A stretch of 64,000 nucleotides of DNA, taken from Octopus sinensis. Lineage: Eukaryota. Location: positions 67,580,001-67,644,000 of the forward strand of contig NC_043002.1 of assembly GCF_006345805.1 (NCBI RefSeq), read 5' to 3'. Under the pieces are notes generated by a model, which did not search any database, had not been told where the DNA came from, and saw nothing but the letters and a program-made list of their open reading frames with translations. The position numbers and the translations under genes were made by a program. Position 1 is the first letter of the stretch. Every line of letters begins with the position of its first letter. Shown piece by piece: positions 25,174 to 47,265 of the stretch.

Positions 25174-25340
25174 TTCTTAAATGTTTTTTCCAAATCCTTG
25201 ATTTCTTTCCTGGAAAATTCTTTAAATTCCGTGTAAGGATTGAAAACTTTGGCCGTCGCCTGTACAGTCTCACCAGCCTCAATAGCATCACTAATATTGA
25301 TGCGGCGAGTTAGCAGAGTGGCCAACTCGTCTGTAGCCAT
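25174..25340 (-). CDS. EFHD2: First coding exon (copy A) of an EFHD1/EFHD2 (swiprosin)-type EF-hand protein: MATDELATLLTRRINISDAIEAGETVQATAKVFNPYTEFKEFSRKEIKDLEKTFK(K)
   Basis: Hand translation: ATG at 25340-25338 (context ataatcATGG), 55 codons + 2 nt without stops, then a GTAAGT donor (25173-25168). MATDELA and VFNPYTEFKEFSRK.IKD.EK.FK match the EFHD2 N-terminus and pre-EF-hand region as I recall it; the phase-2 break fits where I recall EFHD2 exon 1 ending. EFHD1 vs EFHD2 orthology cannot be resolved. Confidence 0.93.
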
Positions 25341-25466
25341 GATTATGAATGATGATGTTAGACAGACAAATTAAAATCAAATTGAACTTATGTGAAATAC
25401 CCAAGTGGTTTGGTTGTATTCGTCGTATATCCCAGAACGTAAAGGAGAAAGAAACCCGCAGCGTCT

Positions 25467-25545
25467 GAAAGCGAGTTACTTATTCCTTCTGTGTGTTGTC
25501 ACGCTACTTGATATTAACATTATTGTTGTCAGAGAGGCAACTCCT
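25467..25545 (-). promoter_or_regulatory. Conserved upstream (5'UTR/core promoter) block of exon A
   Basis: Aligns with 47324-47403 upstream of exon B (gaaagcga.ttactt...gtcac.ctactt.atattaa...ttgt.gtca.agaggcaactcct); followed by a CT/GA-rich tract (~25610-25810). Confidence 0.6.
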
Positions 25546-26065
25546 CGTTGCTAAAAGAACCAATAAATCTTTCTCTATTATAGCAAGAATTAACGTTACC
25601 AATTAAATCTTTCTCTCTCTCTTTCTTACAGCCTTTCTAGTCTCTGTTCCACACTGGTCTATTACACAAGGTTGTTTCTCTTTCTATTTCGCTCGCCCGC
25701 GCGTTTTCTTTCTCCCTTCTTCTCTCACTCTTTCTCACTTTCTCTCTCTATCCCTCCCACCCTCTCTATGTTTCACTTTACTTCTTTGTTTACACCCCTC
25801 CCCTCTTCCACCAATATACTATATATACCATATTTCTATCTAGCACGAGCGTGCAACTCTATTCAGTCTGTAGTCGCAGCCACTTTTGTAACGATAGATT
25901 CACTGTGCAGATAAAATGACAAGAACGAACAAAAGTAAATACAGCTAGCTAAAGTCGATCCGAGATGTTTGTCTTTATTCATTCATTATAAACGTATGTA
26001 TGTTCGATAACTATTCAATTGTCTTCATCATGAAGCTGTGGGCGAAGAAAAGGAAGAATTTTGAT

Positions 26066-26083
26066 GGTGATGACGTCATCACC
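26066..26083. promoter_or_regulatory. 18-bp perfect palindrome with full CRE (TGACGTCA) core
   Basis: ggtgatgacgtcatcacc equals its own reverse complement; about 730 bp upstream of the exon A ATG. Confidence 0.45.
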
Positions 26084-44499: not shown

Positions 44500-45130
44500 T
44501 TCCATCCTTCGCTAACTGGGAAGACCTGAAATGTGAAAATCAGAACGCCAGTCGAGAAACTTCAGCATCAGTTAAGTGCATGTGTGTTGTGCGATAAGAT
44601 GTGAAGCAGGTTGCCCTGATTAGATAATGATGGGACGATTTATTTAGGCGCAGGGGTAATGATGGTTTGATAGACTGAGCATTACGGTGTGAATGAGACC
44701 AAGAATATTTGTGCTTGTCAAGGATACAATAGACGTGGGTGGATGACTAGTATAAACAATTCGGCCTCGGGACCAGCAACGCCGGCAGGGAACTATTGCG
44801 TGAGCTAGAAGATACCTAAGTTGAATTCACTACGAACAAGGAATTTAATGAGATTAGATAAATGTTTTCAATACAGAACGTGAGATAAAAACATTAAACT
44901 GAAGAATTACTCGTTCAAATAGTTTGGTGATGGCTGGTGGACTTTGGAATACGGTGGAGGTAGAAGTCAAACTAATGAACAATAAGTAAAAGACACTCAG
45001 GGCTAAGAGTAACTGGAAGTCACTTTTGTTGATATTCAGATGAAAGGGTAAATGGTAAAGAGAGTGGCTTCTATAAACACACAGGCATTCTCTTTCATAG
45101 TATGCTGTGTGGCCTGAAGGGATGAGATGG
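44500..45130 (-). mobile_element. Possible very decayed LINE RT remnant
   Basis: FISLTSTST...ITKLFERVIL weakly resembles the PISLTS..K(L)FER motif. Confidence 0.3.
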
Positions 45131-47010
45131 ATCACGAGAGTGTCTGTTTAGAACGGAACATGAGGTGTTGTTTATGTTATACATATAACCATTTTTGAAG
45201 ATAGAATAGTATTTGAAAGGGACTAGGCTACAATTTCTAGCACGTCGAAAATGATGGGTGGATAGTTCTAGATTAGGCCGCAGTCCACAGATGTTTGCAA
45301 AGAAAGTGAATTTCTAGCACAATATTCAACAACCTCTTAGAGCTCTGAACCTCTTTTTAACCAAATGTTGTTTTACAGTAACCTTCGTTTGTATTTTGGG
45401 GGCGAGGGGAAATTTAATCGAACAGAAGCTAATTTTGTGCAGTGATCTATTAACCACGATCCAACTGGATAGCATGTTAATGTTTATTTAGCATATTAAT
45501 GTTTATTAACATACTATACAATTCAGCATGCGCCTCCTCCTGGATATTTGCATGGACTGCTGTCCCATATGTAAATTTTTTTATATAAATTACTAAAGAG
45601 AGCGATGACTTAGAGAATAAAATTATAACGGATTTCAGTGCGTCATAAGTCATATATCCGCTAACACAATGTCCAACTCATATTCTAATCCCGATAAAGA
45701 TAAAATATCGAGTTCAAATATTTCCAAAGAAAAATCACGATCCCTCTAAACACCTAGTACCCTCCACAATGCCCCTCTTGACATTGGCCGCATATTTGAA
45801 AGTTCAGAGTAGCCCCAAGGGGACGTTACACGCCAAGTTAAGAACCATTGGTCTGGTGACCATAACTGGATTCTAATGTAACATTTTTATGTCTGTAGTT
45901 GCTTTTGATCGTGGATTAAGGAAGAGGAATTCGTAACTCTTGGTTTGTTATTAACTACCAATCTGATCCCTGTAAGCAGGGCCAATAAGAAGGGAATGTA
46001 CTTAGGAGCTCAAGAAATGTTTGCATGTATCGAAGACCAGCATTTACAGAAGGGATAAGGATATCAAAAGAAACTTTGCACTTCCTGATAATTATTCCTC
46101 TGGCAAGTTTTGTCTATAAACAATCTAGCTGGAAGTCAGTGTCCGTAAATGGACCCTCGTGCAATCTTGTGCTTGTCGGTGCATCCATCAGTCATGAACT
46201 GGGAGCAAAAGGGGTATGTAATTTAACTGCTGTTTAGCTCCACATCAACTCTGATCGAGTAGCTTTATGATTAAAAGCATTCCAACTAAGACTATCTGAT
46301 TTGATGGAGATTTGGCTGCTATTTCTAACAAGTCATATGGCCACATAGAAGCTTTTGCGAGGGGGGTCATCGTGAATGTATCTGGGCAAGTGGCCTGCTC
46401 CCTTAATGGAATCATTTACAATTTTCCCCTCTCAAAACCAGAAGATCGTTTTATTCCTCAAACTGGTACTCAGTCCCAAAATTCGCAGAAAATTGATTCT
46501 GCAACAAGACATGCAAAAGCCATGTGTTAGTGTTAAACTAACCATCTCCTCCCTGAATAAAAAATACTATACGGCTGCTCTGTCTCTCGGAAATATCAAC
46601 AAATCGTCTTCTCGTCACAATCCTGTTGTCTCTTTTAAAAGGCAAAAGAAAACACACACACAAAAAAAGGAATCGTGACAATGTACTCTCAAAAAGACGG
46701 GGTGGTCACAGCTGGAATGCCATAACATGGTGTTTTGTCGGGGCATCTTTTTCTTTATGTACATTTGTGATCTATTCTTCCCGTTTGTTTAATTCACATA
46801 GACATTAAATTATAGCCCCGACTTTCTCTCACTTAGATTACCTAAAACTGTACTGTGCAGGTTCATACGAATCTCTCTATCTCTCTCTTTCTCTCTCTTT
46901 CTCTATCTATCTATACATACATACATACAAACACCTACATAGACAGATATATTAAGAGAGAGAGAGAAACAGAAATCAATATCGATAATGAATCAATAGT
47001 GGACCGTATC

Positions 47011-47056
47011 GTCAACAGGCAAAAAGGCTAAGAAGATTAATATACACTTTGAAAAA
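47011..47056 (-). promoter_or_regulatory. Conserved intronic block downstream of exon B
   Basis: gtcaacaggcaaaaaggctaagaagattaatatacactttgaaaaa, about 42 nt from the exon B donor; paralog of 23697-23743. Confidence 0.5.
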
Positions 47057-47098
47057 CATGAAGCACCGACGATTGTAACGAAAGAAAACGAAACTTAC

Positions 47099-47265
47099 TT
47101 ATTAAATAATTTTTCCCGCTCCTTTATTTCTTGTCTTGTAAATTCTTTAAATTCCGTATAAGGGTTGAAAATTTTAGACGTCGTCTCTACGGTGTCACCA
47201 GCGTCGATAGCATCGTTGATATTGTTGCGACGAGTCAACAGGTTGGACAGCTCATCTGTAGCCAT
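47099..47265 (-). CDS. EFHD2: Second first coding exon (copy B) of an EFHD-type protein: MATDELSNLLTRRNNINDAIDAGDTVETTSKIFNPYTEFKEFTRQEIKEREKLFN(K)
   Basis: ATG at 47265-47263 (ataatcATGG), same 167-nt length and phase as copy A, GTAAGT donor at 47098-47093, FNPYTEFKEF invariant, 39/55 aa identical to copy A, no stop or frameshift. Confidence 0.92.

Follow-up and report, generated by a model that had tools for sequence, protein, structure and literature searches.

Does a coding exon that occurs twice within one stretch of chromosome, with neither copy disrupted, mark two genes in tandem or two alternative beginnings of a single gene? The question is raised by a 64,000-nt stretch of the Octopus sinensis genome (contig NC_043002.1, positions 67,580,001 to 67,644,000; here called the window), the minus strand of which carries two versions of an exon encoding the N-terminus of EFHD2. 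EFHD2 is a swiprosin-type, Ca2+-binding, actin-bundling protein that is a subject of work on immune cells, neurons and the dynamics of actin. The evidence set out below makes it very likely that one octopus EFHD2 (swiprosin) gene has the two versions, which we call exons 1A and 1B, as alternatives for its first coding exon.

In window coordinates, exon 1A occupies 47265..47099 and exon 1B 25340..25174, both on the minus strand (MATDELSNLLTRRNNINDAIDAGDTVETTSKIFNPYTEFKEFTRQEIKEREKLFN and MATDELATLLTRRINISDAIEAGETVQATAKVFNPYTEFKEFSRKEIKDLEKTFK, respectively). Each exon is intact and 167 nt long, equivalent to 55 codons plus 2 nt (phase 2), and each is followed directly by a GTAAGT splice donor (47093..47098 for 1A and 25168..25173 for 1B, minus strand) that is kept in Octopus bimaculoides and in a third octopod species. 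They share the ATG context aataatcATGGCTACAGA and are identical at 39 of 55 residues and 133 of 167 nt, and their ATGs are 21,925 nt apart. In exon length, ATG context, donor phase, residue identity and lack of disruption, sequence and translation agree with a preliminary description of this stretch. As that description also said, the program-made list of open reading frames (ORFs) had missed both exons. The reason is that each frame runs past its donor into ...K K TAA, giving an ORF of 56 codons, which falls below the default 60-amino-acid threshold of the ORF lister.

The similarity of the two exons to the EFHD family is not a matter of chance, since several EFHD protein probes matched both of them in tblastn searches of the window with E values of 1e-10 to 1e-14. 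In both, the 3' end of the exon encodes the motif (V/I)FNPYTEFKEF, with the phase-2 boundary falling after ...F(K/N)K, and many exon 1 fragments from other animals have the same phase-2 exon boundary. Certain peptides, IFNPYTEFKEFTR and those containing EIKEREK, are specific to the N-terminus encoded by 1A.

The preliminary description had seen no exon for the EF-hands or the coiled coil in the window and had placed the common exons to its left, as parts of one gene. Both statements held. A genomic look-up for isoform X1 led to a 90.8-kb O. sinensis locus (L009; GCA_006345805.1 CM016864.1:67546441-67637265), to which window positions 1..57265 are 100% identical in reverse orientation. This locus contains one copy each of exon 2 (L009 73973-74120, equivalent to window -16707..-16854), exon 3 (L009 77944-78081) and exon 4 (L009 80694-80825), all on the minus strand of the chromosome and all with AG/GT boundaries. 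Exon 2 starts 16,707 nt to the left of window position 1, so that exons 2 to 4 all lie past the left edge. Window positions 1..25167 (minus strand) are part of the long intron between 1B and exon 2 and contain no exon 2-4 sequence; the intron to exon 2 measures 41.9 kb from 1B and 63.8 kb from 1A.

Joining 1A to exons 2, 3 and 4 gives a translation equal at every residue to XP_029637332.1 (isoform X2), and joining 1B to the same exons gives one equal at every residue to XP_029637331.1 (isoform X1). RefSeq labels these two proteins as isoforms X1 and X2 of one gene. Both are 194 residues long, with residues 57-194 identical and 16 of the first 56 different; 1A thus supplies the N-terminus of X2 and 1B that of X1. 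Protein queries made from the exons alone returned mostly exon 1 ORF fragments from prokaryote-style gene callers, and it was a chimeric full-length query that reached annotated cephalopod proteins. XP_029637331.1 and XP_029637332.1 fell into one 90% cluster with XP_014778636.1, XP_014778637.1, XP_014778638.1 and an Octopus vulgaris protein, CAI9724309.1. The O. vulgaris model, which follows a non-RefSeq naming style, likewise splices 1A onto the common exons.

Two complete EFHD genes in tandem, or a haplotig or misjoin that duplicated exon 1 in the assembly, would also place two first exons in the window, and nothing beyond the duplication itself speaks for either. Five heterologous EFHD probes (P0084, P0224, P0213, P0131 and P0166) found no EF-hand or coiled-coil exon anywhere in the 64 kb, the invertebrate EFHD probes having come from a search of a representative library. 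A human EFHD2 sequence, used purely as a probe, gave no exon 2-4 match in the window, and neither did O. sinensis exons 2-4 themselves, whether compared as protein (best E = 2.5) or as DNA. The left flank holds the only set of exons 2-4 in the 90.8-kb locus, with none between the two copies of exon 1 or elsewhere in the window. With no exon 2-4 match to any probe in the window, we discarded the idea of two tandem genes.

An assembly artefact fares no better. There is no N in the window or in L009, and the window is without an assembly gap. The two copies differ at 20% of their nucleotides, far above the level expected of haplotypes. The same layout recurs in the separate assembly of O. bimaculoides, where the locus (L011) is collinear with that of O. 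sinensis at 85-93% identity. There 1A and 1B lie 20.9 kb apart and are followed by a third alternative first exon, that of isoform X3, and then by a single set of exons 2-4. The O. bimaculoides isoforms XP_014778637.1 and XP_014778636.1 are the same pair as X2 and X1 of O. sinensis. Both copies are also present in genomic reads of the third octopod (SRA runs SRR11869384-94), on separate contigs (L002 and L006). On these grounds we dismissed an artefact as well, and we consider it vanishingly improbable that either tandem genes or an assembly error accounts for the two exons.

If one gene has two first exons, are both of them in use? Both 1A and 1B occur in annotated isoforms of two species. 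No transcript contig for either O. sinensis isoform was found by exact look-up (X1 returned NCBI genome records only), and the support for expression is therefore that of the RefSeq and GenBank gene models. In addition, 1A of O. sinensis differs from 1A of O. bimaculoides by 1 synonymous and 4 nonsynonymous changes, counts that are tiny and not significant. Both observations weigh against the use of 1A and 1B as alternative first exons. They could mean that 1A, as a duplicate in decay or out of use, is a pseudo-exon included through an annotation artefact, and that only 1B makes protein; the faster protein change in 1A (4-6 replacements between species, versus 1-2 in 1B) points the same way. 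Against this, the ATG, reading frame, length and GTAAGT donor of 1A have been kept in three species, and a block of sequence upstream of 1A, described below, is conserved. The exon is used by two RefSeq annotations and by the separately named O. vulgaris model. The two exons have also retained 80% identity to each other, while the neutral flanks next to them have lost detectable similarity.

The pattern of substitution argues further against decay. Comparison of 1A with its copy in the third octopod gave 12-13 synonymous and 5 nonsynonymous changes, for a ratio of nonsynonymous to synonymous substitution rates (dN/dS) of 0.07-0.08 (Fisher p = 6e-7 and 3e-6), which indicates purifying selection on 1A. 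Exon 1B is identical at 164-166 of 167 nt among the three species (98-99%), with flanks at 89-94%. Purifying selection thus acts on both copies, and we regard the view of 1A as a pseudo-exon as highly unlikely. The comparison of 1A with 1B, which the preliminary description had proposed along with that across octopods, gave a dN/dS of 0.20 and a synonymous divergence (dS) of ~0.74, the latter showing that the duplication is old.

We also observed that the neighborhood of 1B (window 24195-25842) is better kept than that of 1A (window 44753-47448). In the alignments of the third-octopod contigs to the window, identity was 89% around 1B and ~81% around 1A, and the corresponding values for O. bimaculoides were 93.6% and 87.7%. 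Synonymous sites follow suit: for the same species pair, 0-1 of 36 had changed in 1B, which is nearly frozen, and 12-13 of 34 in 1A. The excess conservation of 1B could be explained by regional differences in rate, by imperfect orthology of the third-octopod 1A contig or by constraint that acts on 1B as RNA or DNA.

We then asked how the choice between the two alternative first exons might be made. Next to each copy lies a block of ~85 nt that is a putative core promoter or 5' untranslated region (5'UTR) element. Beside 1A (47320..47403, minus strand) the block includes GGAGTTGCCTCT.TGAC.ACAAT, and a TATA-like TTAATAT within it precedes the ATG by 109 nt; beside 1B (25463..25545, minus strand) the distance from TTAATAT to the ATG is 177 nt. 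All six sequences, two from each of three species, have kept the block. The exon aside, it is the sole paralogous similarity found at matching positions, other matches between the surroundings of 1A and 1B being noncollinear. That the flanks show no paralogous similarity beyond exon and block is in line with an old duplication. The block was not recognizable upstream of exon 1 in Argonauta or in a decapodiform-like contig (L001).

A single-copy cephalopod relative bears on the position of the transcript start. There, mRNA contigs (P0254 and L012-L017) contain a 354-nt 5'UTR and exon 1 in collinear alignment with the genomic contig L001. The alignment is uninterrupted, which implies that the ATG exon is the true first exon in that relative. 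In octopus, the presence of the block next to both copies is in keeping with duplication of a promoter or 5'UTR. Provided that the overall gene model is right, we think it probable that 1A and 1B have two separate promoters.

The block also holds the sequence GTTGCCTCT(C/A)TGAC(A/G)AC, an imperfect palindrome that resembles the half-sites of an RFX X-box at a 5-nt spacing and is followed by TTAATAT. We considered GTTGCCTCTCTGACAAC as an RFX X-box and dropped it because the 5-nt spacing of its half-sites departs from the consensus.

Two findings run counter to separate promoters. The sequence TAAG|TTC.ATTT, a possible 3' splice site, is kept in both copies 15-55 nt before the ATG, and in the O. 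vulgaris model CAI9724309.1 a further exon, equivalent to window 63190-63249 (minus strand), lies 16 kb upstream of 1A. Both would fit a single promoter, with 1A and 1B as internal, mutually exclusive exons spliced to a shared, noncoding upstream exon. In the window, 63190-63249 matches the O. vulgaris upstream exon QQLIQGFGDITEEKFELIHR at 19 of 20 residues, but its ORF has an in-frame TGA just before the GT donor. Moreover, the O. vulgaris protein (257 amino acids) enters 1A at an internal AG within the ATG context, a join that turns MAT into HRR and removes the ATG and that looks like an artefact of gene prediction. The O. vulgaris upstream-exon model is probably such an artefact or else a noncoding 5' exon. 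Since each copy keeps its own block with a TATA-like element and the exon is a true first exon in the single-copy relative, we consider a single shared promoter unlikely.

The history and working of the locus may be pictured as follows. A tandem duplication of the first exon together with adjacent upstream sequence very probably gave rise to 1A and 1B, each of which is probably transcribed from its own promoter. Either exon would then be joined to the same exon 2 acceptor and on to exons 3 and 4, and splicing from 1A would skip 1B. Under such an arrangement, 1A and 1B may differ in tissue usage.

A candidate for a third alternative first exon lies nearer to the common exons, at window 12741..12841 (minus strand). 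It resembles a short interspersed nuclear element (SINE), includes the sequence ggttccaggttcaatatcactgcatgacac... and has an open ATG ORF of 33 codons plus 2 nt that ends in ...WESIWLIK and is followed by GTAAGT in the phase of 1A and 1B. Its O. bimaculoides equivalent is the exon with which isoform X3 starts (XP_014778638.1, MVASSVSWESFWLIK; L011 41833-41877). Among the proteins retrieved, no O. sinensis isoform used it. The segment is probably a repeat that has been exonized and serves as a minor, third first exon.

What, then, does the exchange of first exons do to the protein? The full-length product, which has two EF-hands and a C-terminal coiled coil encoded by exons outside the window, matches Pfam EF-hand_7, EF-hand_1 and AIF-1, with the EF-hand_1 match starting at residue 49. 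Residues 20-153 align with the crystallized cores of EFHD1 (7CLT) and EFHD2 (5I2L) with E values of 1e-43 to 1e-49, so that residues 20-56 of exon 1 fall inside the crystallized core. Exon 1 encodes a flexible tail, the FNPYTEFKEF segment and the first eight residues (49-56) of the entering helix in EF-hand 1, whose Ca2+ loop starts in exon 2. The shared residues 57-194 contain the coiled coil, the ligand-mimic helix and the Ca2+ loop of each EF-hand. The differences between X1 and X2 are therefore located in two regions, the flexible N-terminal tail and the first eight residues of the entering helix.

Of the 16 positions at which 1A and 1B differ, about 13-14 separate the two paralogues consistently in all three species. 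Residue 50 stands out most: 120 of the 122 distinct EFHD exon 1 segments that we gathered have M, F, Y or L there, and Arg occurs in the octopus 1A type only. Gln45, too, is confined to the 1A type in this set, and 1A adds Ser and Thr residues just before FNPYTEF. In an ungapped phmmer alignment, residues 41-112 match chain positions 4-75 of calmodulin. This places residue 50 opposite the Phe of calmodulin helix A. Arg50 may alter the Ca2+ response or the packing, and X1 and X2 may differ biochemically. A fixed Arg at a conserved hydrophobic position of the helix hints that the two isoforms are not equivalent. Such a natural helix swap could serve to probe how the entering helix tunes Ca2+-dependent actin bundling.

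The lineage in which the duplication arose can be approached through relatives with a single exon 1. The Argonauta hians locus (L010), which has a 47-kb intron, shows a single exon 1 in the stretch from -10 kb to exon 2, and the decapodiform-like contig L001 contains one copy within 10 kb to either side. In both cases, single-copy status refers to a search that extended 10 kb upstream, and a copy farther upstream is possible. In the Argonauta exon, 1A-like residues are found together with 1B-like ones, and a neighbor-joining tree of the 167-nt sequence gave a bootstrap value of only 45% for its grouping with 1B. The Argonauta exon shares 45 of 56 residues with 1B and 41 of 56 with 1A. Being closer to the outgroups, 1B is the conservative copy and 1A the derived one.

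It is tempting to see the duplication as an innovation of the Octopus lineage that created a functionally distinct EFHD2 isoform, but we hold this view only tentatively and consider it more doubtful than probable. If it is true, then Arg50, the added Ser and Thr residues and a separate promoter could together make for a variant that is tissue-specific and changed in its Ca2+ response, its actin bundling or its phosphoregulation.

Several other features of the window were recorded. An inverted repeat with arms of ~417 nt (51678-52094 and 52423-52840), 99.3% identical and ~330 nt apart, could have arisen by a recent inverted duplication or be a foldback or hairpin element. At 781-1361 and 1330-1911, ~580 nt are duplicated directly in tandem with 98% identity. 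An interspersed family of ~400-450-nt repeats with 77-91% identity (93-576, 14978-15371, 15802-16258, 33549-33979 and 48740-49151), present in both orientations, is probably a cephalopod SINE. Microsatellites of the (TA/CA)n type are abundant and account for long, spurious ORFs with a high content of Y, I, H, T and C. When five of the window's larger ORFs were scanned against Pfam, nothing meaningful came back, and these five are microsatellite or repeat read-throughs.

How does the arrangement compare with what is already known? The preliminary description was not aware of any account of such an arrangement for EFHD, and a literature search found no paper on a duplicated EFHD2 first exon. The duplicated exon is nevertheless already public, in the automated RefSeq isoform models of two Octopus species, O. 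sinensis and O. bimaculoides. These models represent the gene described here, without any structural difference: X1 starts with the 1B peptide, X2 starts with the 1A peptide, and residues 57-194 are shared.

Within the EFHD family, vertebrate EFHD1 and EFHD2 have the same domain layout as the octopus protein. In vertebrates the paralogues are whole genes, whereas in octopus the first exon alone is duplicated, within a single gene. We also noted RefSeq proteins of 96-98 amino acids, named "EF-hand domain-containing protein D2-like," in the teleosts Xiphias gladius and Anarrhichthys ocellatus that contain the exon 1 region only. They could be truncated exon 1 duplicates, and thus a possible parallel to octopus, or split gene models.

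Outside the family, tandem variable first exons that are spliced to constant exons are found in UGT1A, the clustered protocadherins and GCNT2 (PMC1885805). Octopus EFHD2 resembles these loci in having tandem-duplicated homologous first exons, every one of which has a separate start codon, a separate donor and, presumably, a separate promoter. As in these loci, one or the other exon would be joined, in a mutually exclusive manner, to one set of constant exons. It differs from them in having only two paralogous copies and one unrelated, SINE-derived exon. The variable exon of octopus is also small (55 codons) and encodes a tail and part of one helix, not a whole domain, and the choice of promoter, unlike that in the other loci, is a putative one. 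The likeness to cassette loci drawn in the preliminary description is apt as far as homologous first exons on common exons are concerned but overstated in scale, as there are two such exons, or three if X3 is counted.

Tandem duplication of exons is also said to give rise to mutually exclusive exons, as Kondrashov and Koonin in 2001 and Letunic et al. in 2002 reportedly described. Exons 1A and 1B share with such pairs the same length and phase, purifying selection and the exchange of a homologous segment, but in octopus the duplicate is a first exon. Its exclusivity would be due to the use of promoters and to the absence of an acceptor, in place of the competition between splice sites or the RNA pairing of mutually exclusive exons. 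Octopus EFHD2 is a modest case of isoform diversity gained in a common way, by the tandem duplication of first exons, and one whose alternative first-exon architecture could be recovered from raw sequence alone, with the shared exons correctly placed outside the window.

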